Source of the DNA: Isurus oxyrinchus
Taxonomy: Eukaryota
Direction: 5' to 3'
Length of the DNA: 64,000 nt
NCBI GenBank assembly: GCA_026770705.1
Contig: JANJGN010000151.1
Location: forward strand, 186,001 to 250,000
Shown here: in pieces, positions 629 through 51,031 of the stretch
How the letters are laid out: each line of letters begins with the position of its first letter
Numbering within the stretch: the stretch's first letter is position 1
Notes under the pieces: model-generated
What the model was told of the DNA's origin: nothing
What the model saw: only the letters and a program-made list of their open reading frames with translations
Databases searched by the model: none
Made by a program: the position numbers and the translations under genes

Positions 629-668
629 CACACTGCTGCAGAGATATAACGGATCCAGTACAAAAACC
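629..668 (+). other. RSS: CACACTG-24 bp-ACAAAAACC
   Basis: Heptamer 629-635, consensus nonamer 660-668 directly after V exon. Confidence 0.85.
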
Positions 669-675
669 TAACACC

Positions 676-710
676 GAGAGTTCCAGTTAGTTCTCAGCAG
701 AAGGTGCTCT
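676..710 (+). promoter_or_regulatory. RSS-proximal CTCF-like motif (degenerate copy)
   Basis: gagagttcc-agttag-ttctcagcagaaggtgctct; homologous to better-matching copies at 2403, 13456, 40769, 46124, 50521. Confidence 0.5.
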
Positions 711-1279
711 GACACCAATAAACAGATTAAATAATCCCGCCTCCACAGCGAGAGTCTCAGGGACCATCGCAAAATTGCAACAAAACACAACCCCCTCCAA
801 GATCCGACAATGACCACTTCAGTAGTAATATCATCATGCGATTTCAACTCGAGCATATAAGAAAAATGAACATCGTGAATCAATCTGTGGTGCTTTCACA
901 CACCTTTCTTTTCCTTGGATGCCCTTCACTGCCGACTTGTTCTTTCTCAGTCTCTGCCTTCACTCGTTACGAATAATTTCAGCCATTCTCTTCTTCCAGT
1001 CTTTACATTAAACGTTTCAGGCCATTGATAATTGTTGTAAATTACCTCAGACTAACGCAGCTGCCCATAGATTCAGGCCCAGTTTTATCCGAGGTTGCTA
1101 ACGTGGATTCCCTTTATTACTGAATAACTTACTCATCCTGACATGCCTGTATTCACCCTGTTCTGCCCAGTATGGAATGAATGTGAAAGTACAGCAGTTC
1201 TCATAGAGAGACAGAGTTACATCATTTTCGACCGTGGTATTATTGTTATTATTGATTTCAGCTCCTGACAAGTGGGTCC

Positions 1280-1560
1280 GATGTGTGATAACAGTCTGCT
1301 GTAGCACCGCCCACAGCTTCCCGTTTGCAGCCGTCTCTCTGACCCGCCTTGCCTGCCCTCTATTATTGGACCGGTTGCTGCCTCTGTTCTGGTTGGCATT
1401 GTTTGGGTCAGCAGTTCAGTGGGGCGGGGCTCAGTATTTCTGCTCTGACAGAGGATTTCTCGGGCTGCAGCATTCAGAGAGAAGAACCATCCTGCGTAAC
1501 CATTTCAGTCCGCTCCTCATCATTAGATCACTTCTCAATATGTATGTCCTTCTTCGTGAA
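1280..1560 (+). pseudogene. Orphan family-A promoter + decayed leader exon with no V exon
   Basis: Aligns by eye to 20-200 (cagcagttcagtggggcgggg..tatttctgctc..ccgctcctcatcattagatcacttctca); ATG and GT donor lost. Confidence 0.65.
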
Positions 1561-1596
1561 ACTCCATTCATTCCATTCTGGGAATCCCTGTCTGTT

Positions 1597-1770
1597 GAGG
1601 GTTGTATCGAGTCTCGGGCAGGTACAGCCACAATGTTCAGCGGCGCAGTCAGTCGCTTAGACACAAACCGAAAGAAAACCACATTAACCTCGGATCAAAC
1701 TGTCACCAACTGTTTTCAGGAGCGGCCAACAGAACAAACTGCAGAGTCCATTCGACCGGCATATCATCAC
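1597..1770 (+). repeat. Locus-specific ~175-bp repeat carrying RSS-like motifs (copy 1 of 5-6)
   Basis: Near-identical copies at 22488, 42096, 47013, 48850-49036 (-) and a diverged one at 33690-33830. Confidence 0.8.
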
Positions 1771-2402
1771 AGAATCAGATTTGGACTTACCTCTTCTAAT
1801 CCCCACCCTCAATAGATTGTTGCTATGTCTCAGGTAGCTTTCATCTCACTTCCTTCTGTCTCCATGGGTCTGTGAGATCCTTCGGTGGTCAGCTGCACTT
1901 TTCGAGACAGGTGTGGGTGGAATTAAACTTTGCTCTGTTCATTATCACCAGAAAGCTCGGGATTTTAATAGCGACAGAAAAGCTTCCAGCATTAAGGGAA
2001 CATTCTGAAGCTCAGTGGTCAGCGGGTGAACTCTGTACCTGAGATTTGTTTTAGAGATCATAGTTACTGCCTGGTGAGCTGCGCTCGTTGTGTATAAACT
2101 GTCTCCGACCCAGCAACACACTCTGATCAAACAAACCCTGTGAACGGGCCGCGGACGATGAAACCGACAGGGGAGACGGGGAAAGGGTTGTTCAATATAA
2201 TAGACAGGCACAGAAATGGCATCAAAAGGCAACAAGTTAATGAAAGTAATCAAATACATTTATGAAAATCGATTGTGGCACAAGCTGGAGTTGAAATCAG
2301 CTAATATAATTCCGCTAACGTTGATGTTCTTAATGCATCTTTTAGGAAGTCCTGTGACCCTCACTGTGGGGAATGCTTTATTGCTACTGTTTCGCGGTGT
2401 GT

Positions 2403-2435
2403 GAGCGCCCTCTGCTGAGCACAAACTGGAATTCC
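2403..2435 (-). promoter_or_regulatory. RSS-proximal CTCF motif
   Basis: Minus strand gggaattcc-agtttg-tgcTCAGCAGAGGGCGCTca, 23 bp past the nonamer. Confidence 0.75.
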
Positions 2436-2441
2436 CAGTGG

Positions 2442-2918
2442 GGTTTTTGCTCCGGACCTGCTATATCTCTTTTGCAGTTTGGGTTCATTGGCACAGAAAT
2501 ACACGGCGCTGTCGGAGAGAAGAGCCCCGGAGAAATTTAAATGAACAGTTTTGTTTCCTATGTGCAAATCAGCAAAGAACCTGTCTGTTAAGTTTGGAGA
2601 CTACTCTTCATCCCCCAACTTTATATTTTCAGTAAATATCTCGGAGCTTCGCCAGGATGCTGGTTGTACCAGGACAGAGTTTGGGCAGGGTCGGTTGTCG
2701 AGTAACTGCAGTCCAATGCTATGCTCTGTCCTTCCAGAATCATTCATTCAGACGGATCTTGGGACACTGAATCCGCGCCACTCGTTCCCGTAACACAAAT
2801 GCAGAATTTTTCAAAAGTCAGTGAGGAAATATAACCCCTGTAAACACACTGACAATGTAGACATAGAGTGACCAGGCAGCAAGTGCATCATTATCAGTAA
2901 CGAACATGGGGAGCACAT
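2442..2918 (-). pseudogene. TCR V pseudogene, family B (leader 2873-2918, V ~2482-2788, RSS 2442-2481)
   Basis: Leader MCSPCSLLIMMHLLP; acceptor mutated (ttacgg); DSVSQDPSE*..LDCSY..SWYNQ..DSAVYFCANEP with stops; heptamer CAAACTG, 24-bp spacer, GCAAAAACC. Confidence 0.88.
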
Positions 2919-3890
2919 GGTGCCTGGTATCGAGCGCAACAGAAAACCACAGGTTATTCTAAATATGTTGATCCCTCTGGTCTGATATTAAAGTGCAACC
3001 CAGATCAGGATCAGATCTCACTTTTTTAGAAATAGAGGAGTGGTTACCCGAGAGAGGATTGGCTGGTCTGTTGGAGATAATGACAGTTCCCCACCAATCA
3101 AGGAGAGCTGCAGACAGTTGGTTTCTCTGATTACCTCCAACATTCTGATATTTTTATCTTGTTGGTCTTGATGTCTGGTGGGTCAATCTCCCCTTAAAGG
3201 AAACATTCCCTCCGCAGTAAAACGCGGAACAGTGGGGTGAATACAGGATTGCACAAATTCGGCAAGCGCACAGTTACGCGTAAACACTTCCAGGCGGCGT
3301 GAATGTCAGCCTGGAGTTCTCTCATTGATATCGGAGTGAAAGTCAATCAGGAAATGTAGTTTACGTTTGTCTCATTCAATGAAACCATAGTGTCCAAAGA
3401 GCATTGAGGCGGCGTGGTAAATATAAACTGCACTGGTACAGAAAGCAAATATGAAGCAAATGTGGATTTAAAGGCAAAGGAGTAAAATTATTTACAGGCA
3501 ATGAGGAACCAGCAAACAACCCTGCTAAATTAAATGATTTTGAGCCGGCGATGACCATTGACGTTAAAAATACCCCAGAGATCCAATCAACCTAAATAAA
3601 ATAATCTATTGTTGTAAAGAGAAGGAAAAATTCATTCCCAGTGACTGGTCAAGAGTTCTCTGCATTGAGACAGCCAGTCCCTGCGTGATGCACTGAATGA
3701 CGCCTGATGACAGCAACCAATAATAAGTCGATTGGTGAGAAAATCACTCATCAGTCATTCACTATAAGCGGAGGATGTGAAGCTCTCGCTCTCCCCCTCC
3801 TCTCCACCATAGTGAACCCTGGGCTCGGCAGCAAGTTCCAGCTTGGAAATCAGACCCTGATGGATCCACCTTTTGTTCATCTTCGTCATC

Positions 3891-4358
3891 ATGAACAGAA
3901 ACCCCTGCAAAGGCCTGTTTACAATAGGGTCCCTGATGCTCTGGATATTGTGTGAGTTTATTTACCTAGTCAGATGCATTGTCTAACCAATCTCTTAATA
4001 CCCTGTCGTAGTTTGTGGAATTTTCCCTCTGTTTACAGTCGTTCAGTTTGAGGATCAGAGCTCCCACCCTGAGCAGGTGGTGTGTCGGGAAGGGGAACGG
4101 GTTGAAATGAGCTGTCGGCTCTCTATTGGCTCTGGTCATACAGTAGCCTGGTACAGGCAAACACTGTCAGGGGCTCCGACACTTACTGGCTCCTAATATC
4201 AGGAGAGCGGACAGAAGGACGCTCCGCATTGTTCTTTGATCGAGTGAAGAATTTCAACACCATATCTATAGACAACACAGCCGTCCAGGACGCCGGAATC
4301 TATCACTGCGTGAAGCAGACACAGTGAGACATAGAGCGGATCAGGCCGTACAATATCT
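3891..4358 (+). pseudogene. TCR V pseudogene (leader 3891-3951, V 4039-4319, RSS 4320-4358)
   Basis: Leader MNRNPCKGLFTIGSLMLWIL|gtgagt; EGERVEMSC..AWYRQ, frameshift near 4180, DAGIYHCVKQ; CACAGTG-23-ACAATATCT; CCAAT and TATA-like motifs at 3717-3767. Confidence 0.88.
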
Positions 4359-4639
4359 TGTTCACTGCCCTTCTCCGCTGCACCTTTAACTTTTACCCAA
4401 ACGGGGCCTTTTGAAATGCCGGCGATGGTCAGAAATGTTACTTTCTCATTTTCAAACCTCCATCTGGATAAAGTTAGAAAATTCCAAGGCTGTTGCTGTA
4501 GATACGGCGCCCAGAAACATATTAAGTAAAACTTGGTTATAGAACATACGAAGTAAAGATATGGACAGACAAAGGTATGTGACTCTCATATACCTAGATA
4601 GGTACATAAACGAGAAAACGAAACATAAGCAAGGAGATA

Positions 4640-4698
4640 AATAGATAGGTAAATAAAAAGATAGATAGATAAATAGATAGATTGATAGATAGATAGAC

Positions 4699-4734
<36 letters not shown>

Positions 4735-4750
4735 TGATAGATAGATACGA
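4640..4750 (+). repeat. (GATA)n microsatellite
   Basis: Direct reading. Confidence 0.95.
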
Positions 4751-4872
4751 AGATAGGATGAGAGGAAGATATATCAGTTTATTATGCAAAAACAATTATA
4801 GATTTATATAATTTCATATAATTATGTTCCTTTTACATATCATGATGCTAATTTTATTCTTGTTCTCGCAGC

Positions 4873-5190
4873 TGTTGTTTGTAAGTCGGAGACATTTCGG
4901 ATCTCGGTGTATGGGGGAAGTGAAGGACAAACTATTTCACTTCATCATTCTGCTACTTTCGCTACCAGTGATCTTGGATTCTGTTACCGGCAATTCTCCA
5001 AACGAGCTCCCTAGTATTATGTCCCCACACTCAGAGATGAAATAGTTGCGGGAAGGTTTAAAGTATCCTGGAGCAGTGAGAAATGCTCCATCACTCTCAC
5101 CGTTATCATAGTCCGGCTATCAGACACTGCGGTGTATTACAGTGCAGTGAGACACGGGAAACCAATAGGTGAGAATCTTGTACATAGACA
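4873..5190 (+). pseudogene. Highly decayed TCR V exon
   Basis: ttctcgcag acceptor; FCYRQFSKRAP*Y; RFKVS..ITLTV..LSDTAVYYSAVR; decayed RSS cacggga..acatagaca. Confidence 0.7.
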
Positions 5191-6270
5191 CTCTCGACAT
5201 GGAGACTGAGGGAACAACCAGCTCACGGGTATTCGAAGTGCGAGTGATACAAGTGAAATCAGTCAAAAAATTGTAATTTGTTATCAGAGCAATTTAGTAG
5301 AATAAAATAATATTTATTTATCGGTACGAGAGATCTCGACTGTAAAGAATACGCAAACAATGAAGCACTGAAGCAACCAGAATAAAGAAAGAAGGACTGT
5401 TTGTTATTGAGTACAGTTCCTGTCCCTACATCTCAGCAGCGCCAGAATGAGGAATACTAGATACATCCTTAAGTTTACAGGTCAATAAGCAAACATGACA
5501 CAGCTGGCATTAGATGAACACATATCGGGTAAACACATTACCAGATACCTAAAGGAACCAATTTCAAGTCACGTGGAATTTCTGCTTCTGGGTTGGTTGT
5601 AACTATTGTTCACACGATGAAAGAAGCAGTTTGTTGATCTGCTCCTCCCTAGCCCAGCGGCTCACATCTGAACAGGCCAGTTGACTGAAGACCAGCAAGT
5701 TCCTCTCCTCCATGTGTAGGAGGAAACCTGTCGCTTTCTGCCAATGGCTCTGGAAAGGAACATATCAGGCACTGGGTGTTCGAATCCAGTAAAATTCTTT
5801 CCTGATAGAATGAATAGAGGCTGGAGAAATGTACCTCACAAAGGAATCAACATCTTCCGGCAGCTTCCAGCTTTTTATTCAGAGACCTATTTCAGGCAAT
5901 TGAAATATCTCCTGGGGGGAAGGGAGTTTAAAGGAAAATGCAGTTTTCTCGTTGTTACATCTTTTCCTTCAAGGTTTACTTCAACATTTACTTTTCCCAC
6001 TAGTTATTTGCACTTTCCTTTATTCATCTTTTCTTATTTTGTTAATGTCCTTTCCCTGAAATGAATTGACAAACGTTTCTACCCATTCTTGCTCTCAATC
6101 TCCCTTTCCATGTTTGCTCCTCTGTTTTCCCTGCCTGGGTTTCCATTTATCTTTATTTCGCACTTTTTGATCTCTCTCTCTTCACTATTTTCTATTTTAA
6201 GCTCATGCACTATAGATTTCCATTATTATTACCGGATATGCCAAAACACAGCAGAGGAGCTCTCCCACAG

Positions 6271-6610
6271 GGTTTCTGTACGGACTCTGTTTGCTACACT
6301 GTGGCCTCACGCACAGAGATAGGTGGTGCTGTCTGTCATTTGGATGTCCCTCAAGGTCATTGTGCTAAATTTATTGACTCACCGGATTGCAACAGTGATC
6401 CTTCCTTGTTGATCGGTACCACATGTGGCCATAACCAGATGCTGGAGGGGCTGTTACGGGCGGAGTCTGTCCCAGTACGAGACGGTAGCCGAGCAGTTCA
6501 TGGATACGATTCCCACGTCACTGAGAACCAGCCGCCCAGGGAGCTGCACAACCTCAGCTTCACTTGAGAAGTGCATAAACCATCACGAAAACCCAGTAAA
6601 TCTGGAACAT
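6271..6610 (-). pseudogene. TCR V pseudogene, family C (single-exon leader+V)
   Basis: ataATG at 6610; EAEVVQLPG..SMNC..QPLQHLVMAT..TDSTTYLCA*; CACAGTG with spacer shortened to 17 bp and ACAGAAACC. Confidence 0.82.
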
Positions 6611-6819
6611 TATTGAACCGGATGAAATGCTTGTAGACTGAATTGTCCACGGAGAACCAGGGCACGAGAGCAGATTCAGGAGAGCTAACAATCAGCCAGA
6701 CCCCCGCTTCAGACCAAACTCAGAGGTTTCTTCGTGTGGAAAACCGAAAGAACATGTGCTCGGAATGTGCCTACTCTGGAGCTTCCACTTTCCATGTTTC
6801 TCACTAATGGCAGCTTACA

Positions 6820-7362
6820 ATAGGAACAGGAGAAGGCCATTCAGCCTGTCGAGCCTGCCCTGGCTTTTACCCATACTATCTCCATAACCCCTTACGTTAT
6901 TGTGAATCGGAAATCTATCAATTGTACCTTAACTACACTCAAAGACTGAACTTTCATGGCCCTCTGGGGTGGAGAATTCCAAAGATTTGCAACTCTCAGA
7001 GTAAAGAAATTTCCACTCATCTTTGCCATTGGTCGCTTCCGCATTATTTTAAAATTGTGTCCTCTGGTTCTAGACTCTCCAGTGGGGGGAAACATCTTAC
7101 CTGCATGTACCCTATCTATTATTTTAAGTGTTCTGTAGGTTTCAATCAGATCACCTCTCATTCTTCGAAACTTCAGAGAATGCAGGCCCAGTTTCCCCAA
7201 TCTCTCCTCATAAGACAGTACCACCATTCCAGGAACAAGTCTGGTGAACCTTCGCTGCACTACCTCGAAGCGAAACTATTTCTGAGTTAAGGGGGACAAA
7301 ACTGCACACAGTACTCTAGGTGTGACCTAACCAAGCTTCTATTTAATTGAAGCAACGCTTTC
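6820..7362 (-). mobile_element. CR1-type LINE 3' fragment
   Basis: QRRFTRLVPGM..LSYEERL..LGLHSL..RRMRGDLIETY..SRTRGH..FFTLRVANLWNS, the typical CR1 ORF2 C-terminus. Confidence 0.9.
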
Positions 7363-7364
7363 CT

Positions 7365-9632: not shown

Positions 9633-9805
9633 NNNNNNNNNNNNNNNNNNNNNNNNNNNNNNNNNNNNNNNNNNNNNNNNNNNNNNNNNNNNNNNNNNNN
9701 NNNNNNNNNNNNNNNNNNNNNNNNNNNNNNNNNNNNNNNNNNNNNNNNNNNNNNNNNNNNNNNNNNNNNNNNNNNNNNNNNNNNNNNNNNNNNNNNNNNN
9801 NNNNN
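9633..9805. other. Assembly gap
   Basis: N run. Confidence 1.
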
Positions 9806-10756: not shown

Positions 10757-12773
10757 TAGGCAAACAGAGAAATGAGGTGAACTATAAGCTGGCAGAGGTG
10801 GGTAGGACAGGTAGAGCTGGATTGGGGGACAGTGATAAGGAGGCAACGAAGAGATTGCCAAAGATGTCATAGGCAAAAGGACAAAGGGGTGTTGACGTTG
10901 GTGATATTATCTAAGGAATAGGGACCCTAAGGGTACCAAGCAGGACAAGCTAGTGGCAGATGGACATAATGGGTGTTGGGTGGGGGGAAGGGATTGAAAT
11001 GAGCGGAAAGGTGGAGATAAAACAATAGATCGAATTACATTTAAAAATAGGTGGGAAAAGAGAAATATATATGTTTTAAAATTATAATTTATGGGAAAAA
11101 GGGTGATCCGAAAGGGGGTGGGGATGGAAGAGAGAGTTCATGATCTGAAATTGTTGAACTGAATATTAAGTCCAGATGGCTATAAAGTGCCTAAAGTCGG
11201 AAGATGAGGTGCTGTTCCTCCAGTTTGTGTTGAGCTTCACTGGAACAATGCAACAGGCCAAGGACGGACATGTGGGCATGAGAGCAGGGTCGTGTGTTGA
11301 AATGGCAAGCGACAGGGAGGTCTGGGTCATGTTTGCAGACAGGCTGAATGTGTTCCACAAAGCGGTCACCCAGTCTCCGTTCCGTCTCTCCAAGGTGCAG
11401 GAGACCGCATTGGGGGCAGCGAATGCAATAGACTAAATTGAGGGATGTGCAAGTGAAGCACTGCTGCACTTGAACGGAGTCTTTGGGCTCTTGGACGGTG
11501 AGGAGGGGGGGAAGTAAAGGGGCAGGTGTTGCAACTTCTGCGGTTGCATGATAAGGTGCCGTGGGAAGGTGCTAAGGTGTAGGGGGTGATGGAGGAGTGG
11601 ACTAGGGTGTCCCAGAGGGAAAGATCCCTGCAGAAAGCCGCCAGGGGCAGTGAAGCACCCTCGATTTTCCACCCACGGTTGTTGACAAGGCCCTCAACAG
11701 TTCCGACCCATATCCTACGCATCCATCCTCACACTTTCCTCTCCCTCCCAGAACCATGATAGGGTCCTCCTTGTCCTCACTTATCACTCCACCAGCCTCT
11801 GCATTCAAAGGATCATCCTCCTCCAATTCCGCCAAAACCAGCATGATGCCACCATTAAACACATAATCCCTTCACTCCCCCGCTTGCTTTCCGCAGGGAT
11901 CATTCCCTCCGGGATACCGTGGTCCACTCCTCCATCACCCCCCTACACCCTCACCACCCTCCCACGGCACCCTTCCCATGCAACCGCAGAAGATACAACA
12001 CTTAACCCCTTCTCACCGTCCAAGGAGCCAAACGCTCCTTTCAAGCAGTGCTTCACTTGCACTTCCCCCAATTTAGTCTACTGCCTTTGCTGCTTCCAAT
12101 GCAGTTTCCTCTACATTGGAGAGACCAAACACAGACTGGGTGACCGCTTTGCAGAATACCTTTGGCCTGTCCGCAAGCATGACCCAGACCTCCCTGTCGC
12201 TTGCCATTTCTACACTCCACCCTGCTCCCATGCCCACATGTCCATCCTTGGCCTGCTGCAATGTTCCAGTGAAGTTCAACGCAAACTGGAGGAAGAACAT
12301 GTCATCTTCCGACTAGGTACTTTGCAGCCTTCTGGACTTAAAATTGAGTTCAACAATTTCAGATCATGAACTCTCTCTTCCATCTCCACCCCCTTTCCAA
12401 TACCCCCTTTTCCAATAACATATAATAAAAATATATTTTTCCCCACCTATTTTAAAATTTGTTTCGATCTATTTCTTTAATCTCCACCTTTCAGCCCATT
12501 TCGATCCGTTCCCCCTGCCCCACCCCCAAAAGGGCCATCTGCCACCAGCTTGTCCTGCTTGCTACCCTTAATATCCCCATGAGCACATTCCTTAGATAAT
12601 GTCACCACCGTCAACACCCCTTTGTCCTTTTGTCTATGACATCTTTGGCAATCTCTTCTTTGCCTCCACCTATCACTGCCCCCCCTACCCAGCTCTTTTT
12701 GTCCCACCACACCGCAGCCCCCCCCCCCCCCCACCCAACAGCATATATTACATCTCATTTCTCTTTTTCCTTA

Positions 12774-12810: not shown

Positions 12811-13455
12811 TGTCATTCCGCTTCGCAGATTCTGTCAGACCTGCTGAGTCTTTCTAGGTATTTTTGTTTTTGTTTCATCCGCAGTATTTTGCTTTTATAT
12901 TCATGATATCATACATTCGGATTCATCTGCAAGGAAGCGAACCAGTAGTAATATCCACTTCGAAAAGGATATAAGTCTGTCTCTCTAGAAGAGTTGCGGC
13001 ACTCACATATTCATTCCATACTGGGGACGAGCAGATTCGGGACAGGAGTATCAGGATTATTATATTATTCAATTAAAGGCCATTTTTTTCATGAATAACC
13101 TCTCGTATCCAGGGCTGAATCTATAGGCATCGGGGTTGGAGGGGTTGTGAATTAATACCCAAAGAAGTAGCAAAGGGCCATCTCCTTAAATCAAAGACTG
13201 AAAGAAGAAACTGTACACATTTTTTTTACCGAAAGGAGAAGGGATGATAAGAAAGAAGTCAGCAGGGAAATGCGTCGAAAAGGATAAGTGGGATTGAAGC
13301 ATTACATTGCCATTTACAAAGTTCGTTTTTATTATAAATTCAAATTTTAAAGACAAGCTAATGTAATTAGCTGTTCTTGTTGAATGTGATGATCTTTTGA
13401 AAAGGTCCGCGTGACCTCACATTCGAAGTAGAATTCTTCCTTTTTTGTGGGTGTG

Positions 13456-13476
13456 ACAGCGCCCTCTGCTGAGCGG
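13456..13476 (-). promoter_or_regulatory. RSS-proximal CTCF motif
   Basis: Minus strand cgcTCAGCAGAGGGCGCTgt, 21 bp past the nonamer. Confidence 0.75.
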
Positions 13477-13493
13477 TAATTGAAAAAACTGTG

Positions 13494-14040
13494 AGTTTTT
13501 GTCTTCGTTCCACGATCTCTCTGTAGCAGTGTATGGCTCATGGCACAGAAATACACGGCAGAGTGGGAAATCAATGTGTTGCCGATCGTTAGATCAGCGA
13601 TCTTGGCATTTCTAATTAAGCGAAGAAGAAAACCAATAATTGATATCGGCGCTCCTGTACACATTCTTTCGAACATGATAAAGCTTCCACTCTGGAGGCT
13701 GCCTGGGATGCTCACTGTGCCACTACACATAAAAGCTGCGATTGCTTGCTTTAAAAATGCAAGTTTGTGCAGCATTGATTTCCTCTTCATCCAGTATTTC
13801 ATGAACCGGCTGTTCTACTGTGCCTTGGTTGTCCCATTCTAACATTAAAGAAAAGTAAAAACAATAGTCAGCATCAGCTTCGTGTCGGTCAACATAATCA
13901 TCATCACCGCCATCACTATTATTTTAACAACAATGACATCTGGGTCACAGCAATCAGGAGGATAGTGGACTTTACCGGGAAGGAGATGCTTGCTGAGAAA
14001 TGATATAACAATGAAAAGCGGAGTGAAATTGTTCCCCTTG
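13494..14040 (-). pseudogene. TCR V pseudogene, family A (V exon 13534-13838)
   Basis: Start ATG->AAG, donor GT->GC, stop before WHS, SHSAVYFCAMSH; TACACTG-24-ACAAAAACT. Confidence 0.85.
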
Positions 14041-15080
14041 ATACGTCATGAGTCTGTAACTTACATGCAAAAAATCCTGTGTCAAAGCAGAAATACAGAC
14101 CCCCGCCCCACTGCAGTGCCCAGCCAAACAATGAGAAGAATGAACCAGCGCCAGCAATCGTTCCAATAACATAATCGGGTCAGAGAATGACCAGCTGTGG
14201 GCGGGGATACCGCAGACTCAATATTAAGTGAAGTGCGCGATAACTCTCAGCTGCTCTCTGAACTGAGGGAGCGGAAATAGCGACGGTTGAAATTTCACAA
14301 GTTTGTGACAATCCTGCAGCTGCTCACTGTTCAAGTGACAGAGAGCAAATAGAGCAGAAGAGGCATGAAGAAACTTGAATCATGTAATTTTAAACCACTG
14401 AATTAGATTATTTGCCATACCATCCCTGTGTCTGTTTGGAAGAGTTATCAAAACCGCCTTTCAACTCCTGCAGTTTCCGCATGAGGGGCAAGTTTTCTCA
14501 TTTTCAACTTGCAAACAATTTCTTTTTGAAGGTTCCGATTGAATGTTCTTCTTCCATCCTTTAGGTCGTGCATTTTAGGTTTCAACACAGTGTAATGAAT
14601 GAATTTCACCTTTTTGCTTATTTTTTCTTACATTTTCTTCTCTGAAAATGGGGTGTATGCGTTATCGAATTTTCTGCCACTGGGCACAATAATGCACGAT
14701 TTATTACATCAGATCTCTTATCATTTTGACTACTTCAATTAAGTATCTCCTTTAAATCCTTTCATAAAAGAATAACGCCAGTTTTCCTCGTCTGTTTACA
14801 TTTAAGGTAGCCACACTTAGTACCTGCCTCGTGCATTACTTCTAATGTGTAATATCTTATATATTATCATCCTATCTAAATAGTTTTTCCTTGATTTTCA
14901 AACAGTAATATAGAAAGAAATGCATTATTCTCTGGCATAAACACAAAAGAAAGCCTGAGTCTGATAAGCTCCAATTTCAATTCCTTGGAAACAATATCTG
15001 GCATGCTTGTTTTAATATGTATACCAATGAATTCCACAGCCACCCAAAGGCCCCATTCTCAACCAAATTGAACAGAATCT

Positions 15081-26208: not shown

Positions 26209-26729
26209 GATCTCTGTGAATCCCAGCCGCAGTGCGTCTCTGCAGGTTGATCTGATTGTCCTTTGCGGGAAGCTGATCGAGTACTTGTGTTGAGCAGCTC
26301 GTATGTGCCGGGTTAAACAAACCAGGAGCATCCGATAGCCGCTCCTGAGATAAATTAGCATATGAGGGAGAGATCCAATCTGATTGGACGAAAGGACGTG
26401 ACATGTAAATTTATTCTCAGATGTTGTCGTTGCTGGTGGGTCCGCAGTTGTTATCAGTACCCAGTTGGCCCAAGAGAGGAGCGTCAGTACTACACGAAAG
26501 TCGTTTTTCTTAACATTCTGGTCATATGGCCCAGCAAGGTGCTCAGTTACATAAAGGCAAGTAAAGTTAGGCAATAAATCCAATCATGACAGCACACGCA
26601 TCTCCGGAAAATAAACCGAAACCTTCCCAACAATTTGAACACATGGCCTACATCACCTCAGACGTAACATTATATTGAATCTCCTTCCTTCACCGTCAGT
26701 GGCCTTTCATTAAAGTTAAACAGCATAAT

Positions 26730-27120
26730 TTTTGTGAGGAGGGAGGAGGTAAAGGGGCAGGTGATACACCTTCTGCGATTGCACAGGAAGGTGCCTTGGG
26801 AGATTGATGAAGTGTTAGGGGTGATGGAGGAGTGGACCAGGCTGTTGTCGAGGGAACAGCCCCCACAGAATGCCGACAGGGTTGGTGAAGGGTTGGTGTG
26901 TTTGGTGGTGGCATCGTGCTGGAGTTGGCAATCGCAGAAGGTGCAACACCTGCCCCATTACCTCGTCCTTCCTCACCGCCCACGGGCCCAAAGATTCCTT
27001 TCAGGCGAAGCAGCGCTTCATTTGCACCTCCTTCAATTTGCTCTGCTGCATTCGTTGCTCCCCATGCGGTCTCCTCTACATTGGAGAGACCAAATTCAGA
27101 CTGGGCGACCACTTTGCAAT
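26730..27120. mobile_element. Penelope GIY-YIG fragments in inverted arrangement
   Basis: FICTSFNLLCCIRC..CGLLYIGETKFRLGDHF (+), preceded by a minus-strand piece matching 11500-11650. Confidence 0.8.
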
Positions 27121-27129
27121 GAATTACAT

Positions 27130-27985
27130 AGATTCAGCACTTTCTGGCTAAAGAAGTTTCGCTTCATATCTGTTCTGAAAGGTCTTCCCTTTACTTTGAG
27201 GTTGTGCCCTCAGGTCCTAGTCTCCCCTACTAATGGAAATATCTTCCCCACATCCACTCTATCCAGGCCTTTCAGTATTCTGTAAGTTTCAATCAGATCC
27301 CCTCTCACCCTTCTAAACTCCATCAACTATAGACCCCCAGAGTCCTCAAACGTTCCTCATATGTTAAGCCTTTCATTCCTGGGATCGTTCTCGTGAACCT
27401 ACCCTGGACCCTCTCCAGTGCCAGCACATCCTTCCTGAGATACGGGGCCCAAAATCGCTCACAATATTCTAAATGTGGTCTGACCAGGGCCTTATAAAGC
27501 CTCAGCAGCACATTCCTGCTTTTATATTCTGGTCCTCTCGGAATAAATGCCAACATTGCATTTGCCTTCCTAACTACCACGTCAACCTGCAAGTTAACCT
27601 TAAGAGAATCCTAGACTAGGATTCCCAAGTCCGTTTGCACTCCAGATTTCTGAATTCTCTCCCCATTTAGAAAATAGTCCATGTCTCCATTCTTCCTACC
27701 AAAGTTCATGACCTCACATTTCCTCACATTTTATTCCATCTGCCACTTCTTTGCCCATTCTCCTAACCTGTCCAAATTCTTCTGCAGCCTCCATGCCTCC
27801 TCAATGCTACCTGTCCTTCCACCTATCTTTGCGTCATCTACAAACTTAGCCAGGACGCCCTCAGTTCCTTCATCTGTATCATTAATGTATAAAGTGAAAA
27901 GCTGTTGTCCCAACACTGACCCCTGCGGAACTTCACTAGTCACCAGCCGCCATCCTGAGAAGGACCCCCCTAATTCCCACTCAAA
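27130..27985 (-). mobile_element. CR1 LINE ORF2 fragment
   Basis: VPQGSVLG..LFTLYIND..KFVDDAK; LYKALVRPHLEYC..WAPY. Confidence 0.92.
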
Positions 27986-28598
27986 TGCTCCCCACCACAA
28001 ATACAGATAGATAAATAGATGTAGAAACAATATTCACACTCAGGCATAAACGGGTTAAAAGCGGCCAAAATGGAGTTTCGAGTTCCTGCTATGTTTGTCC
28101 TTCGTGCGGTACTATCTGTTTGGTTTAAATCTTACTATATAGGTGTCTGCCTGTCCATTTCACTCTTACTACAACAATCTTCTAATGAATAATGTCTGGG
28201 TCTGTCTAGTTGGCTGCCTTTTTGCCTCTCTGCCTTTCTCTCTCTCTCTCTCCGTCACACACAACTACGCCCCTCACTTTCTATTCTCTAGCTCTCTCTC
28301 TCCTACTCTCCCTCGATCTCCTTCCATCATTCTCTATCTATCTGTCTCTCTCACTGTTTCTCTCTCCCTCTCTCTTTCCCTGTTTTTGTCTTTCTCTCTG
28401 TTTCACCATCTGTATCTCTACATTTGTTTATCAACCTGTCTACCTATGAATGTCCAGCCGTTATTCAAGCCTTTCTCTCTCTTTCTCTTTGTCTCCCTGT
28501 GTATATACTGTTAAATAAACCGACATATTATTACGGAAACATGCCAATGATCTGTTCTTCATGCTCTTTGCACGAGTAACCAGAAATCCTTTCTGTAG

Positions 28599-34574: not shown

Positions 34575-34946
34575 GGTTTCTGTACGAGAGCCACATATGT
34601 TTTTTACACTGTGGCCCACAGCGCAGAGATAGGTGGCAGTGTCTGTAGCTTGGGCATCGCTCACAGTCAGGATACTGAGTTTGCTGCCTTCACCGATTGA
34701 AGCCGTGATCCTCCCTTATTGACCGGTTCCTCTTGTGGCCATTACCAGATACTGGGGTGGCTGATTCGGGAGCTGTCTGTACCAAAACATGAAGTTAAAC
34801 GCTGTGGTGCGAGTGCAGTTCATGGTTACGATTTCCGCTTCCCTAAAGACCACCTGCCCAGGGAGCTGCACCACCTCATCCTTACCGGCCACCTCCTTGT
34901 AGATCAGAGTGAAAAACAGCAAACAGATTATGTAAATTCTGATCAT
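34575..34946 (-). pseudogene. TCR V, family C (single-exon leader+V 34614-34946), one premature stop
   Basis: MIRIYIICLLFFTLIYKEVAG-KDEVVQLPG..MNC..FWYRQ..GQ*GRI..TDTATYLCAVG; CACAGTG-23-ACAGAAACC. Confidence 0.9.
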
Positions 34947-35730: not shown

Positions 35731-35763
35731 CACTGCCCACTGGTGGCGGTGATTGGAACTACA
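35731..35763 (-). promoter_or_regulatory. CTCF motif with upstream module
   Basis: Minus strand gtagttcc-aatca-ccGCCACCAGTGGGCAGtg. Confidence 0.6.
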
Positions 35764-40275: not shown

Positions 40276-40748
40276 ATGTGCTCCCCATGTTCTTTGCTGC
40301 TAATAATGATCTTGCTACCTGGTGAGTCAATGTTTAAATGGTCGTGTCCGTTACTTGTGTTATCTTCACTCCCAGATATTTGATACATTCTGTGTTTTGT
40401 TGCAGGAATAAATGGTCAAGATTCAGTGTCCCAGGATTCCCTGAATTAAAGGTCCTGGAAGGACAGAGCATAAAACTGGATTGTAATTATTCGACGGCTG
40501 CTGTCCCAACCCTGTTCTGGTACATCCAGTATCCCGGGGAAGCTCCGACATATTTAATGAAGATATATAGCTCAGGGAATGTAGATAAGTCTCCAGATTT
40601 CCCAGACAGGTTCTCTGCTGTTTTGCACAAAGGAAACAAAACGGTTCATTTAAATATCACCGGGGCTCTTCTATCCGACGGCGCCGTGTTTTTCTGTGCC
40701 TTGGAACCCTCACTGCTGCAAAGATATAGGGGATGCCGTACAAAAACT
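40276..40748 (+). pseudogene. TCR V pseudogene, family B (leader 40276-40321, V 40406-40708)
   Basis: Intact leader MCSPCSLLLIMILLP; 1-nt deletion at ~40440 (gattccctgaa); rest open to DGAVFFCALEP; heptamer CTCACTG, 24-bp spacer, ACAAAAACT. Confidence 0.88.
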
Positions 40749-40753
40749 CCACT

Positions 40754-40787
40754 GGGATTTCCCATTAATGCTCAGCGGAGGGCGCTC
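40754..40787 (+). promoter_or_regulatory. RSS-proximal CTCF motif
   Basis: gggatttcc-cattaa-tgcTCAGCGGAGGGCGCTc, 23 bp past the nonamer. Confidence 0.7.
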
Positions 40788-41522
40788 TCACACCGCTAAA
40801 CTGAAGCAATAACTCAGCCTGTGAGGGTCACAGAGTCTTCAATAAAATATCAAAACAAAAACACAACGCTGAAGAACGGGTGAGCAGCAACTGAGGAATT
40901 ATATTAGCTGATTTTAACTTGCAACTGTAGTAAAATTTAATCCACAAATAAATTTGTATTGCACTAACTCACATTTAGTCTTTTGATGATCTTTCATTGC
41001 CTGCCTGAACTCTTATGCAGCCCTTTCCCCTTCTCCACTCTCTCCTTCAAGGCCCCTTTTGTCAAAGCCTGTACGTGGTGTTTATTTGACCAGAGTACTT
41101 TGCTGGTTCAAAAACAGTTTATAGAAAACGAAGACACTTTATCAGTTTGTGTTATCACTCTTTAAAACAAGCCCCGAGGACAGAGTTCCCGTAATGTTCA
41201 TTCTCCTTTCGAGTGTCAAACCTTTCCTGACGCCATTAACAAACCAGTGCTTCTGAATTGTAATAACTAGACCAGGGGGTCCAGTCCCATCCCTGTCCCT
41301 AACCATGTAACCATTCCTCTTGAAAGGACATTGACTATAGCTCAGCTCGGGTTGTTTCCATTCGCTGCCAGCGTGTTCCCAACTACAAACCTTAAAGCAT
41401 CACTGGATACACAAGGAAGTGAGGTGAGATGATGTTGAGAAACATCAGAAGATACTTGATGGTGAAGATTACAACAAGTTCCTTCTAATCACAATTTACA
41501 TTTTACAGAGCGGGCATCGACA

Positions 41523-42060: not shown

Positions 42061-42095
42061 GTACTTTGGGCTGTGTCTGGCAGATCCTGTCTGAT

Positions 42096-44805: not shown

Positions 44806-44809
44806 TTAG

Positions 44810-45115
44810 GCTAAGGGGTGGCAGATTTAAATCATAAATGAGGAGCAATTACTTTTCTCAAAGGGCCGTGAATCTGTGGAATTCACTACCTCAGAGTGCA
44901 ATGTATGCCAGGACGTTGAATAAATTGAAGGAGGAGATAGACAGATTTTCAATTAGTAATGGGTTGAGAGGTTATGGGGAGAGGATGGGATATTGCAGTT
45001 GAGGCCGAAATGAAATCAGCCGTGATCGTATTGAATAGCTGGGCAGGTTCGAGGGACTGAATCGCCTACACCTGCTGCTCGTTCTTATATTCTTATGTTA
45101 TGTTTTATGTTCTTA
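44810..45115 (+). mobile_element. CR1 3' end
   Basis: gtgaatctgtggaattcactacc.. and (ttcttatg)n tail. Confidence 0.8.
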
Positions 45116-45569
45116 TTTCACTGCCATTTGTTCAGAGCTGGAACCACTGCAGAATATCCGGCTATGTGGAAAATGCGGAGACGAAAGATGAATTGTATAA
45201 CTCTTTCCATGAAGTCTAGACGTGACTCAGTCCTTCTTCTAAGATTCTAAACACCTTATTTGGTTTCAGTCAGTTGAACAGTGAGCAGGTGCAGGATGGT
45301 TAGAGAATTCTGCAGATTCAACCGTCGCTATTTCCGCTCCAGCAGTACCAGGTGCAGCTAAGAGTACTGCACACTTCATTCAATATTCAGTCTGCGCCCA
45401 CAGTTTCCGTTTTCTGCTGTTGCTCTGATCCGATTGTGCATTGGAGTGATTGCTGCCGCTGGTCCATCCCTGCCATTGGTTGGGTCAGCAGTGCAGTGGG
45501 ACAGGGATCTGTATTTCTGCTCTGGCAGAGAATTTCCTGCATTGCACAGTTGCAGACTCAGGAAGTTCC

Positions 45570-46100
45570 ATGGGGAACCGTCTCGCTCCGCTCCTCATCA
45601 CTTCTCAGTAAGTACTTCCTTCCCAGTAAAACTCCATTCTCTTCCTGATGCTGTAACCCAGATGTTGTTTTTAGTAAGAAAATGGTGATGTTGATGACGA
45701 TTATGTTTACTTAAATGAGGCTGATGCTGATTGTTGTTATTGCTATTGTTTTATGTTAGAATGGAGCCAACCAGAGACAGTGGAACAACCGGTTGCTGAA
45801 ATAACGGCGGAAGATTAAAGTAATGTCACACTAACTTGCACCTTGAAAACAAGCGATTCTAACCCTTATGTGTACTGGTACAGTCAGCGCCGCGGGCAGC
45901 CTCCACAGTACATGCTTCACATTCGGGGAGGGAAACAATACAGACACACCGACATCACCGATCGCTTTTCAGCTATGTTAAATAAAACAGCCAAGATTAC
46001 CGAGCTAATGATCTGCAATGCCCTGATCTCTGACAGCGCGGTATATTTCTGCGCCAGAGAGCCCATACTGTTGCAGAGACGTGGACCCCGTTCAAAAACC
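45570..46100 (+). pseudogene. TCR V pseudogene, family A (leader 45570-45607, V 45760-46063)
   Basis: 8-nt leader deletion, TAA after AED; otherwise very close to 130-628; CATACTG-21-TCAAAAACC. Confidence 0.9.
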
Positions 46101-46107
46101 CCACACT

Positions 46108-46142
46108 GAGAGTTCCAGTTAGTGCTCAGCAGAGGGCGCTCT
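46108..46142 (+). promoter_or_regulatory. RSS-proximal CTCF motif
   Basis: gagagttcc-agttag-tgcTCAGCAGAGGGCGCTct, 25 bp past the nonamer. Confidence 0.78.
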
Positions 46143-47012
46143 CACACCCATAAATAGAAACAATAATCATGCCTCCACAGTGGGAGGCACAGAGACCGTC
46201 CTAAAATTGCACCAAAACACAACCCCTTACAAGAACTGACAATGATCACTTCAGCAGTAATATCAATGTGCGTTTTCAACTCTCACACCTAAGAAAAATG
46301 AACACTACGAATCGATATATGGTGCTTTAACTCATCTTTCTTTTCCTTGGATGCGTTTCCCTGCCGACTTGTTCTCTCTCAGCCTCTGTCTCCACCCGTT
46401 ACGAATAATTTCAGACATTCCCTTCTTCCTGTCTTTAGTTTAACCGTTTCAGACCATTGATACTTGTTGAACATTAACACAGACTAATCCAGCTGCCCAT
46501 AGATACAACCCTCGTTTTATCCCAAGTCGCTAATGATAATTCCCTTTATTATTGAATAATTTACTAATTCTGACTTGCCGGTGCTCACCCTGCTCTCCCC
46601 CAATATGGAATGAATATGAAAGTGCCGCAGCTGTTATAGAGAGGCAGAGTTATGTCATTTTCGAAGGGGACAATACTATTGACTTCAGCTGCTTACAAAT
46701 GGATTCCATGTGTGACAAGACTTCCTGATGTAGCCCCGCCCACAGCTTCCGTTTGCTGTCGCCTCTCTGACCCGCCTTATTATTGGACCGAATGCTGCCT
46801 GTGTTCTAGTTGGCATTGTTTGGGTTGGCAGTTCAGTGGGGCCGGGCTCGGTATTTCTGCTCTGACAGAGGTTTTCCCGGACTGCAGCAATGCAGAGGAG
46901 GACCATCCTGTGGAACACCCTCAGTCCGCTCATCATCATTATCTTACTTCTCAATACATATTTCCTTCCTAGTGAAACTCTATTCACTCCATTCTGGGAA
47001 TTCTTGTCGGTT

Positions 47013-47190
47013 GAGGTTTGCATCGAATTTCGGGCAGGTGCAGCCAGAATGTCCAGCGGTGCTGTCAACCGCTCAAACACACACCGAGAGGAAACCACTT
47101 TAACCTCAGATCAAACTGTCACCCAACTGTTTCCAGGAGCGACCGAGAGAACAAACTGCAGAATCCGATCCGACTGACAGATCATCACAG
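47013..47190 (+). repeat. Locus-specific RSS-like repeat (copy 4), after an orphan family-A promoter/leader (46700-46975)
   Basis: Direct paralog of 1280-1770. Confidence 0.8.
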
Positions 47191-47935
47191 AATCAGATTT
47201 GAAGATACCCATTCCAATCCCCACCCTTAATAGTTTGCTGCTATGTGTCAGGTAGTTTTCATCTCACTTCTTTGTGTCTCCATGGGTCCGTGAGATCCTT
47301 CGGTGGTGAGCTGACTGACATTGAATGGAAAAATCCTGAGCTGGACTACAGTCAGATAGGGGAAATCCTGCACTTTTAGAGATGGGCGTGGTGGTGGGGG
47401 GAGGTGGGGGGGCGCGGAGTTCAATCCTGATCTGTTCATTATCACTAGCAAATTTGGGATTGTTAATGGGTACAGAAAATATTCCAGCATTGAATGAACA
47501 TTCTGAAGCTCAATGGTCAGTGGGTGAACTCGAGATCTGAAGTTTGTTTTAGACATCACAGTCACTGCCTGGTGAGCTGGGTTCATTGTGTATAAATGGG
47601 GAAGGGTTGTTCAATATTACAGACAGGCACTGAAACTGCATAAAAAGGCAATAAGTAAATGAAAGTGATCAAATTGATTTATGAAAATCGATTATGGTAC
47701 AAATTCGAGTTGAAATCAACTAATATAATTGCGCAAGTGTTCCTCAGCTCTTCTTCTTTGCTGCTGTTATTAGGTGTTTTAGGAAGGTCCCTGTGACCCT
47801 CACTGTGGAGGCTCCTTTATTGCTTTTGTTTAGCCGGAGTGAGACTGCCCGCTCTGATGTCTGTACCGATTACAATCCGTCAGCGTCTCGCTGGCAGGTG
47901 TTTGTACGATCTCTACTGATCTTTGCTGGACTGTG

Positions 47936-48436
47936 TCCCAACCGCATAGAAATAAGTGGTGGTGTCTGTCACTCGAGCGTCACTAACATTCAGAGCACTG
48001 CTCTTCTCTACTGCAATCAACCGAGCTGTGATCCTGTCCCGAACACTGGCCAGGTGCTGCACGATTCTGTCCGGGTGTTGCCTGTACCAGTGTAGGATCT
48101 GTCCTCCTACTCTAATGGAACAGCTGAACGATGAAGTTTCTCCTTTGGTAGCAACCACTGACTTGGGAGATTGTGACATTTCTTCACTGTCAGTGGAGTC
48201 TGAGAAGAATATGTAGATATAGAGTAATAAGATGAAATCAATATTATCTAGCACAATAAACTATAATATAGCACAATAAGAACAAGATAATAGAAGATAT
48301 GCAATAAAGTAAAGTACAATGTAAAACAACATAAGGGATGTATAAAATATTCTGGTCAGGAATAGTGAGCACACTAACACGGAGGGAAAAGTAAGAAATC
48401 CAGGGAGATGATCACTAAAGTGAGGCTCAGCTTCAT
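47936..48436 (-). CDS. TCR V segment, family F, open frame but second Cys replaced by Tyr (leader 48379-48436, V 47936-48199)
   Basis: MKLSLTLVIISLDFLLFPP T|gttagt; ttctcag acceptor; EEMSQSP..FSC..HWYRQ..TDTTTYFYAVG; RSS CACAGTC-23-ACAAACACC at 47897-47935. Confidence 0.75.
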
Positions 48437-48849
48437 GTCGGACCCTATCGACTTCAGTAAAGTAACTCTCAACAGATTCAGGCCAAGAGGCGCTGTCGGG
48501 GGAGGCAGCGCTGTGCCCTATCAAACTGAGCCCAACACCAGTTACACTGCGTCCGCCAGACCGGAGTCTCTGGGACTTGTGATCACAAACTGAAGCTGCG
48601 ATGGAGCTTCAGCATGATGGGGCGTGGGGGAAGGGAGTACGCATGCGTCAGAGCATCCGCCAGTAAGACTCCACCCACAGCCTGTGTGACGTCACCCTGC
48701 AGCTGTGAGACGTCTTCGCCCTGCAGTCAGTGTGATGTCAGACGGTCTGGTTTGAGGATCAGAAACATCTTTCCCGGAGCTGATCTGAATATCGAGCTCG
48801 GAGTTTAAGGGAAATAAAAGCTGATCAGAAACAGGAAAGATGGTTTAAC

Positions 48850-49036
48850 CTGTAGATTTATTTGACATGTGTTCGGTAGGGTCGGATTCTGCAGTTTGTT
48901 TTCTTGGCCGCTGCTGGAAACAGTTGTTGCCGGTTTGATCCGAGGTGAATGTGGTTTTCTCTCAGTGTGTGTTTGAGTTGCTGACAGCGCCGCTGGACAT
49001 TATGGCTGCACCTGCCCTGGATTCTGTACAAACCCC
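48850..49036 (-). repeat. Locus-specific RSS-like repeat (copy 5)
   Basis: GGGGTTTGT-12-gcaggtg-cagc-CATAATG-25-ACACACACT. Confidence 0.8.
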
Positions 49037-49069
49037 AACAGGCAGGAGCTCCCAAGCACAGCACAAAGT

Positions 49070-49560
49070 ACTGGGGAGTGAGATTGCTTCCCAACATAAA
49101 CCTCGGTTGTGCCCTGCTTCTGATGAGCTCTTCACAGTTCACTTCCTTAACTCAGAGAGAGGTGTGACTGTCTGAACGGTCCTTTTGCTGTTGTCTGTCT
49201 CACCAATTGCCTGCAGACATGAGTAAGACTGCCCCTGTAAATACAGCCCGATCGGGATCAGCCGGTACCAGAATAAAACGCATTCACTCCGTGAAATATC
49301 ATCAGTGAAACTTAAACCAGCTACTTCTCCTTCAGTCTTAACATTTGAGGACAGTATCTGAGTAACGATCTCCATAATTCAGACCTGAAACACATGATCA
49401 AACAGAAAATGCTCATACAGGAGAGTGTTTAAAACTCAGATTGAAACCATGTTTTGAAAATGAGATGAAATGTGTTTATTTCACTGTTCCCTGTCAGGAA
49501 TACCCCGGTCACTCCCCATACACCCCAATTGCTGCTTGTCGACATTGTCGCTGTCCGCTC
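49070..49560 (-). pseudogene. Decayed family-E V
   Basis: IVTQILSSNVKTEGEVAGLSF..LFWYRL, then non-V sequence. Confidence 0.68.
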
Positions 49561-50267
49561 TGTGAAAGGGAAATTGAGATTAGCAGAAACCATCAATAAT
49601 CGGTTGTTATTCTCGGGACCCTCTCACCTCATTCCCTTGTGTATCCGTTGGTTCTTTAAGACCTGTAGGTGGTGGGGTGGGCGGGGGGTTTGGTAGCGGA
49701 GGGGAGCGGCTGTCAGTGAATGTAAATAGCCCGAGCGGGGCTATTGTCTGTGTCCTTATAACGGAAATATTATATTATTAGGGACAGGGGTGGGGATGGA
49801 TCCCCTTGTCTGGTTATTGAAAAACAGAAACACCGGGTTGTGAATGGTGTAAGAAAATATCAAGCAGACACTCGAAAGGACAATGCACATTGAGGGAACT
49901 CTGTGCTTGGGGCTTGTTTAAAAGAGCGCAATCATTCCCTTGTGAAATGTGTTCATTTTCTACCTACCTTCCATGAACCAGAAAAATAGTCTGGTCAAAT
50001 AGATAACATGTGCCGGCGTTGACCAAAGAGACTTTGAAAGAGACAGTGGAGATCGAGAAAGGGGCAATAATTCTCGACAGGCAAGGAAAGATCATCAAAA
50101 GGCAAAATGTGAATTAACGCACCACAAATTAATTTGGGAAATTCATGTTTAGTATAGATGCGTGCTAAAATCCCAACTCATAGAATTCCTCAGTTGCTGC
50201 TCAGCTGTTCTTGTTCAGTTATGATTGGTTTTGATATTTCATTAATGACCATGTGACACCTACAGGC

Positions 50268-50487
50268 CTAAATAGCCAAGTGGTTATGGTACTGGGTTTG
50301 TAACACCAAGATTGAGAGTTCAAATCTCACAATGGCAAAACTGTGAAACAATGTAACTTCATCTGAAACAGATGGAAACGGGTTTGTGCTCGAAAGAGTA
50401 TCAAGAGTTCAAATCTCACAATGGCAAGCTATGAAACAATGTAACTTCATCTGAAACAGTTGGAAACGTGTTTGTACTCGAAAGAGT
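50268..50487 (+). mobile_element. tRNA-derived insertion with internal 89-bp tandem duplication and 7-bp TSD
   Basis: A box TAGCCAAGTGG, TGT anticodon-like loop, B box GAGTTCAAATC; TACAGGC at 50261-50267 and 50488-50494; absent from paralog at ~40815. Confidence 0.8.
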
Positions 50488-50520
50488 TACAGGCTGAATT
50501 GTTTCCGTTTTTTCGGTGTG

Positions 50521-50555
50521 ACAGCCCCCTCTGCTGAGCACTGACTGGAATTCCC
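50521..50555 (-). promoter_or_regulatory. RSS-proximal CTCF motif
   Basis: Minus strand gggaattcc-agtcag-tgcTCAGCAGAGGGGGCTgt. Confidence 0.68.
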
Positions 50556-50560
50556 AGCAG

Positions 50561-51031
50561 GGTATTTGTACGGGATACGCTATATCTCTGCAGCAGTGTG
50601 GGCTCCATGGCACAGAAATACACGGCGCTGTCGGAGAGAAAAGCCCCAGCGGTATTTAAAGGAACCGTTTTGTTCCCATTGTGCAAAACAGTGGAGAATC
50701 TATCTGGGAAATCTGGAAATTTTCTGCATTCCCCGAGCTATATATCTTCATTAAATATCTCGGAGCTTCCCCGGGGTACTGGATGTACCAGAACAGAGTT
50801 ACACCAGCTGCCGAATAAATACATTCCAGTTTTATGCCTTGTCCTTCAAGAGCCGCTAATTTAGGGGGATCCTGGGACACTGAATCTTGACCATTTGTTC
50901 CTGGAACAAAACACAGAACGTATCAAATATCTGGAATTGAATATAACAAATGGAACAGACATGGACCATTTAAACATTGACTCACCATGCAGTAAGATCA
51001 TTATTATCATTAAAGGGCACTGGGAGCATAT
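50561..51031 (-). pseudogene. TCR V pseudogene, family B (leader 50986-51031, V 50601-50900)
   Basis: Start ATG->ATA; QDSVSQDPP..LEC..FWYIQYPG, frameshift ~50720, DSAVYFCAMEP; CACACTG-24-ACAAATACC. Confidence 0.9.

Follow-up and report, generated by a model that had tools for sequence, protein, structure and literature searches.

In the current model, in which RAG scanning is driven by cohesin, CTCF sites adjacent to the recombination signal sequence (RSS) have a central part. Those of the mouse Igh locus (Ciccone et al.) have the core GACCAGCAGGGGGC 17-19 bp 3′ of the nonamer of the heavy-chain variable (VH) segment, and in human the distance is 19 or 48 bp (PMC6746451). The mouse sites are conserved like the RSS and far above the linker, nearly all have one orientation relative to VH transcription, and they follow a locus-specific sub-consensus with extra flanking bases; they are confined to certain VH families, following the V tree, and functional members of the 7183 and Q52 families keep the site whereas dead ones are usually without it (PMC6746451). 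Mutating these sites alters V usage (reviewed in PMC7930373). At the T-cell receptor (TCR) loci of the mouse the arrangement is different: in TCR alpha/delta most of the bound CTCF sites are located upstream of V promoters or in intergenic DNA (PMC5859386, Table 2), and in TCR beta only two CTCF sites are near an RSS (PMC5859386). The literature that we searched describes RSS-adjacent CTCF sites only for mammalian Igh, and none for an antigen receptor or TCR locus of a cartilaginous fish. Here we describe candidate CTCF sites placed behind the RSSs of TCR-type V segments in the shark Isurus oxyrinchus, within a 64-kb stretch of DNA (contig JANJGN010000151.1, positions 186,001 to 250,000) that is referred to as the window.

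An earlier note on this DNA had reported six V segments of two families, A and B, each with a CTCF-like motif 21-25 bp past the nonamer, and all six are in place. When both strands of the window were searched with the 15-mer core TCAGCAGAGGGCGCT, allowing up to two mismatches, exactly these six sites were found against 0.10 expected, and none of 100 shuffles gave six. Every core is on the same strand as its V segment, and reading along that strand one meets first the end of a V-type exon (DSAVYFCA), then heptamer, spacer and nonamer, and only afterwards the core. The linker from nonamer to core is 25, 23, 21, 23, 25 and 23 bp for the sites in window order, and all but one of the six RSS spacers measure 24 bp, the exception being 21 bp. 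Five sites also match the extended 25-mer GCTCAGCAGAGGGCGCTNNCACACC with at most one mismatch, against 0 expected. The six V segments and their elements are given below in window order. All bit scores are approximate, as are the counts of the CTCF matrix used (JASPAR MA0139.1).

V exon A1 (family A), 327..625, plus strand: frame open from the splice acceptor to YFCA, the sole open frame among the six.
RSS of A1, 629..668, plus strand: heptamer CACACTG, 24-bp spacer, nonamer ACAAAAACC.
A1 element, 676..716, plus strand: upstream module GAGAGTTCC, 9 bp, core TCAGCAGAAGGTGCT at 694-708 (two mismatches, one a CpG-to-TpG transition; the weakest, 8.5 bits), then GACACC.
B1 cassette (family B), 2396..2481, minus strand: heptamer CAAACTG (2475-2481, CAC lost), 24-bp spacer, nonamer 2442-2450, 23-bp linker with GGGAATTCC, perfect core 2404-2418, CACACC 2396-2401; V exon (about 2490-2790) with stops and frameshifts.
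A3 cassette (family A), 13450..13533, minus strand: heptamer TACACTG (dead), 24-bp spacer, nonamer 13494-13502, 21-bp linker, perfect core 13458-13472, CACACC 13450-13455; V exon (about 13545-13840) heavily decayed.
B3 cassette (family B), 40709..40794, plus strand: heptamer CTCACTG (non-canonical), 24-bp spacer, nonamer 40740-40748, 23-bp linker with GGGATTTCC, core TCAGCGGAGGGCGCT at 40772-40786 (one mismatch, 13.1 bits), CACACC; V exon (about 40420-40700) shifted in frame by 1 nt close to its start when compared with its paralogues.
A2 cassette (family A), 46064..46148, plus strand: heptamer CATACTG, 21-bp spacer (3-bp deletion), nonamer 46092-46100, 25-bp linker, perfect core 46126-46140, CACACC; V exon (about 45770-46060) with an in-frame stop.
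B2 cassette (family B), 50515..50600, minus strand: heptamer CACACTG, 24-bp spacer, nonamer 50561-50569, 23-bp linker, core TCAGCAGAGGGGGCT at 50523-50537 (one mismatch, 11.0 bits), CACACC; V exon (about 50610-50900) with a frameshift and a stop.

The V segments belong to an array of about 13 V-type exons that lie in both orientations along the window. Among the six, only A1 combines an open frame with a CAC heptamer; the other five carry stops or frameshifts, and in four of these the heptamer is spoiled as well (CAA, TAC, CTC, CAT), with one of the four also having the 21-bp spacer. The solved-structure relatives of the family B V are dominated by TCR alpha V domains, while those of the family A V are TCR alpha/delta V domains together with immunoglobulin (Ig) light V domains. 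Protein searches returned two weak matches for the family A exon, one of them a bat TCR beta, and none for the family B exon, with no cartilaginous-fish relatives among them. The window is consistent with a TCR alpha/delta-type V array. An assembly gap at 9633-9805 is touched by no cassette, the closest core being 3.6 kb away; because continuity across the gap is not established, the order and orientation of the sites at 694 and 2404 relative to the other four are not secured.

The resemblance to the mammalian VH sites is closer than the earlier note had claimed. In both systems a CTCF-type core lies on the V sense strand at a fixed short distance 3′ of a 23-RSS nonamer, and if the core is defined by the 14-mer GCTCAGCAGAGGGC, the distance in the shark is 19-23 bp, compared with 17-19 bp for GACCAGCAGGGGGC in mouse. 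In both, the core is conserved as well as the RSS or better and the linker is not, a locus-specific sub-consensus is found, and presence of the motif tracks the phylogeny of the V families. There are also clear differences. The carriers in the shark are TCR alpha/delta-like V segments (family A being also Ig light V-like) of a cartilaginous fish and do not resemble VH, five of the six have a 24-bp RSS spacer, and V segments and motifs alike lie in both orientations. The shark sites are, besides, candidates for CTCF binding and function. With the mouse Tcra/Tcrd and Tcrb loci the window shares a TCR V array having many V-associated CTCF or CTCF-type sites; unlike the sites of Tcra/Tcrd, those described here are coupled to the RSS rather than placed upstream of promoters.

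We suggest that selection has preserved, in a clade of TCR alpha/delta-type V segments of a cartilaginous fish, a cassette of V segment, RSS and candidate CTCF site that has the strand and nearly the spacing of its VH counterpart, and that it has done so even where the V segment is dead. This is the reading we favour, although we give it somewhat less than an even chance, and its parts are not equally secure. What is new is the presence of RSS-associated CTCF-type sites on TCR-type V segments, and their persistence on pseudogenes; the mammalian VH counterpart was already known.

An immediate concern is that the six sites share their history. Identity of the V exons is 0.3-0.5 between the two families, against 0.75-0.9 within them; from the end of framework region 3 (FR3) to about +30 past the core, however, between-family identity equals within-family identity, which indicates that a single 3′ cassette, inherited and possibly exchanged, is common to A and B. 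That cassette is composed of the FR3 end, a 23-RSS-type signal, a linker of 21-25 bp, the 15-bp CTCF-type core and CACACC. The strand of the motif and its distance are inherited with the cassette, and thus the six sites are not independent events; the shared direction of motif and V segment, to which the earlier note had drawn attention, holds for all six but reflects descent and is not evidence of function. Moreover, 1-2600 and 45441-50720 are copies of one segment, about 83% identical, so that A1 and A2, and likewise B1 and B2, are duplicated pairs. Each copy is a tail-to-tail unit in which an A segment is followed by an inverted B segment. The second copy has about 2.7 kb of additional DNA, including a pseudo-V of a further family (E). 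Recent gene conversion between the cassettes of tail-to-tail partners was considered and rejected, since partners are no more alike than non-partners.

It might accordingly be argued that the motif is a functionless passenger of a cassette spread by duplication or exchange, and that its low divergence is due to chance or to a mutational cold spot. The descent of all copies from a single cassette, the origin of two pairs in a segmental duplication, and the equal identity between and within families, which suggests exchange or a mosaic history, are all in keeping with such an account. Its difficulty lies in the rate at which the core has changed. Parsimony changes per column were counted on the six-sequence tree over a 769-column alignment, and core and flanks were compared by a binomial test. 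At 0.27 changes per column (p = 5.6e-5), the core has changed about five times more slowly than the flanks of the same cassette, where the spacer stands at 1.21, the linker at 1.08 and the downstream DNA at 1.5. It is the slowest-changing non-coding stretch of the cassette, and among all 15-column windows it has the fewest changes, tied with the Tyr-Phe-Cys codons. Shared history cannot explain this slowness, because the spacer, the linker and the downstream flank have the same history.

Identity between families A and B tells a similar story. It is 45% in the V exon, 81% in the FR3 end, 83% in the heptamer, 63% in the RSS spacer, 85% in the nonamer and 61% in the linker, reaches 92% in the 15-bp core, and falls thereafter to 72% over +1 to +10 (which holds the invariant CACACC), 56% over +11 to +30 and 33-40% beyond +60. 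The most diverged copy is instructive in this respect: the non-coding block of A3 is only 51-62% like those of the other five, and yet its core matches at 15 of 15 positions, with the GC and CACACC beside it unchanged as well. The core also contains a CpG, which should decay rapidly if it were methylated and unconstrained. Between families A and B the motif is clearly more conserved than the neighbouring spacer and linker; the earlier note had named the lack of any excess over spacer DNA as grounds for refutation, and as the excess is there, the motif is under constraint. The note had further held that in several pseudogenes the motif has kept better than the coding sequence, and this is so: perfect cores are found on three broken V segments. 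At the level of sequence comparison, these data show purifying selection on the core, irrespective of whether the V gene is alive, and we regard the passenger account as quite improbable. Contigs from a closely related organism, with about a third of words shared, were compared over 45600-51000; they cover the A2 cassette and have changes at 46066, 46076, 46081 and 46170; none of the itemized differences falls within 46102-46148 of A2, which carries almost no weight since 153 further differences are not itemized and only about 0.5 changes per core would be expected.

If the core is constrained, which factor binds it? CTCF sites can have two parts, an upstream motif bound by zinc fingers (ZF) 9-11 and a core bound by ZF3-7 (PMC5504073, PMC12885311, PMC10484683). 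The upstream consensus is CAGCTGTTCC, with a linker of 5-6 bp before the core (PMC12885311, PMC9004084), and the two-part motif is identical in lamprey, chicken and human (PMC5504073), so that cartilaginous fish are bracketed by species that share it. Scanning with the CTCF matrix, as the earlier note had proposed, gave 8.5-17.7 bits at the six sites (p from 7e-7 to 8e-5), with the three perfect cores at 17.4, 17.4 and 17.7 bits (p about 7e-7). The core fits CTCF at 14 of its 15 positions, and the variation tolerated elsewhere in the window is CTCF-like. Upstream, the arrangement is TTCC, 6 bp, TGC and core, with three or four positions conserved: TTCC stands 9 bp (6 + 3) before the core at five sites and TTTC at the sixth, a spacing within the published range. 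An upstream module at this spacing had been claimed for five sites; the spacing of TTCC stands for five of the six, although the 8-mer that was named is exact only in the three family B sites and loose in two of family A. In our estimate, CTCF has a better than even prospect of being the binder of the core.

A canonical two-part motif is also found in the window at 35731-35749 on the minus strand (GTAGTTCC, 5 bp, CCG, CCACCAGTGGGCAG; 18.3 bits), which implies that the standard CTCF motif is present in this genome. It lies on the same strand as, and about 0.8 kb upstream of, a family C V segment at about 34620-34930, an arrangement resembling that of mouse Tcra/Tcrd. Other strong CTCF-type motifs without an adjoining RSS are at 15079 (23.5 bits), 17733, 30619 and 55236, all on the plus strand.

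Several observations weigh against the reading that the six elements are CTCF sites maintained beside the RSS, and they concern the binder, the sample and the role. With regard to the binder, all six copies have T at the first C of CCA, where the approximate matrix has C in about 88% of sites; the CACACC that follows the core is unlike either the downstream GAG triplet of ZF1 (PMC10484683), which is absent here, or the GAGCCA motif; and beyond TTCC there is little agreement between the upstream module and the consensus, for only T, T and C of its roughly 10 bp are invariant across sites. The invariant T and CACACC set the shark sites apart from the mammalian VH sites as well. With regard to the sample, the six copies stem from a single ancestral cassette and two pairs among them are duplicates, and hence the effective sample is small; in addition, families C, D and F are without the motif, both by the matrix scan and by comparison of flanks within the window. 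With regard to the role, the sole apparently functional V segment, A1, has the weakest site, while the best motifs are on pseudogenes, contrary to the mouse, where non-functional members are typically without the site. The V segments run in either direction along the window, so that no single recombination centre could be faced by all the motifs; half of them would point away from it.

The first set of these points raises the possibility that another factor, or a pair of factors such as a zinc-finger protein with a binder of the CACCC-box or T-box type, recognizes the roughly 25-bp GCTCAGCAGAGGGCGCTNNCACACC, and that its likeness to CTCF is partial and coincidental. The T is invariant where CTCF strongly prefers C, and the invariant flanking GC and CACACC are matched by no published CTCF module. 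The linker of family B (2428-2436, 40753-40762, 50547-50555) contains GGGAATTCC or GGGATTTCCC at the place where family A has GAGAGTTCC, and in our reading it could also be taken as a kappaB or Ikaros-type site, which would suit a different factor. Against this stands the fit of nearly every core position to CTCF, with tolerated variation of the kind expected for it, and the mouse VH sites likewise have a locus sub-consensus with extra flanking bases (PMC6746451). No better candidate emerged: readings of the core as a neuron-restrictive silencer element (NRSE/REST), a Maf half-site (Maf recognition element, MARE), an EGR/Sp site or an E-box were compared by eye, and all fit more poorly than CTCF. 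We consider binding by another factor unlikely.

If CTCF does bind, several consequences may be envisaged. CTCF would occupy the core in the orientation of the V strand, with its N-terminus facing away from the V segment, and beside the RSS the bound core would be a polar barrier to, or an anchor for, loop extrusion by cohesin, as at mammalian proximal VH segments; cores whose V segment is dead would serve purely as architectural anchors. That the core has this full role in RAG scanning, as an RSS-side barrier to cohesin, is a tentative proposal, and from the analysis we judge it rather less likely than CTCF binding itself and below an even chance. The location of all three perfect cores (B1, A3 and A2) on dead V segments and of the weakest on the sole intact one, albeit with n = 6, is a poor fit to a simple model in which a CTCF-binding element promotes use of its own V.

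The same pattern would be understandable if the sites are bound by CTCF but serve general locus architecture or insulation, for example sub-domain boundaries or germline and antisense transcription, with no effect on the choice of V by RAG. The position beside the RSS would then only reflect the origin of the motif in an ancestral V. Apart from the distribution over live and dead segments, the orientations are compatible with such a function: the motifs point both ways along the window, and each tail-to-tail A/B unit creates a convergent pair of CTCF-type motifs, 1.7 kb apart in one unit and 4.4 kb in the other. Moreover, the other strong CTCF-type motifs of the window are not beside an RSS. 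A purely architectural function does not, however, account for the maintenance of the 21-25 bp distance from the nonamer despite insertions and deletions elsewhere in the flank, and the parallel VH sites alter V usage when mutated (PMC7930373). We hold it to be improbable, to about the same degree as binding by another factor.

Returning to the reading of a selected cassette with an RSS-side CTCF site, its reach within the locus is limited. The motif is present in all six A and B segments and has decayed in family E, whose 3′ flank is as follows.

Family E pseudo-V 3′ flank, 47840..47941, minus strand: exon (about 47945-48240) ending in YFY, without the Cys; RSS and homologous flank present.

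The E core (TCAG-AGCGGGCAGT), at a distance of 39 bp from the nonamer, has lost 1 bp and changed in other ways too, and it gives no matrix match of at least 8 bits, which indicates that the motif can decay despite a homologous flank. In the case of a family C pseudo-V whose nonamer ends 60 bp before the assembly gap, the motif is absent from those 60 bases. The CTCF-type motif is therefore specific to one clade among the V families of the window, and it is not a general feature of the locus.

If the sites are bound by CTCF, a polar barrier to loop extrusion behind the RSS would be either as old as jawed vertebrates or evolved at least twice. It can thus be asked, in a testable form, whether loop-extrusion control of V choice already belonged to V(D)J recombination in its early form or is a solution that has recurred. 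V pseudogenes may in that case have been retained as architectural anchors, giving a concrete reason for their persistence. The window provides a natural experiment for such questions, with live and dead V segments, strong and weak motifs, and both orientations.

Finally, we note other features of the cassettes and their surroundings. The 24-bp rather than 23-bp spacer in five of the six RSSs (629-668 and others) is partly conserved in sequence (CTGCAGAGATATAGNGGATCCCGT), whereas the RSS spacers of families C, D and E in the window are 23 bp and unrelated in sequence to those of A and B. A second conserved block containing CCTCCACAGTGAGGGTCACAGGGACC is located about +35 to +65 past the core and has a perfect CACAGTG heptamer inside it. 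The block is common to the flanks of families A, B and E (739-770, 46171-46200, 2345-2375, 40815-40840 and 47790-47830), and is well kept in family E despite the decayed CTCF-type core. The flank of B2 no longer aligns with its paralogues past about +30, because a very high-copy repeat (50265-50491) interrupts it 32 bp 3′ of the core; the repeat has a summed contig depth of 1e5-1e6 in all four sequencing runs, with many joints of the form 'goes back 227'. Between the V segments there are also retroelement-like open reading frames of the reverse-transcriptase C-terminal type and an 86% inverted repeat (11195-11465 / 12044-12314, and 26696-28030), and the single named relative of such a repeat reading frame is located inside a protein model of the stingray Hemitrygon akajei.

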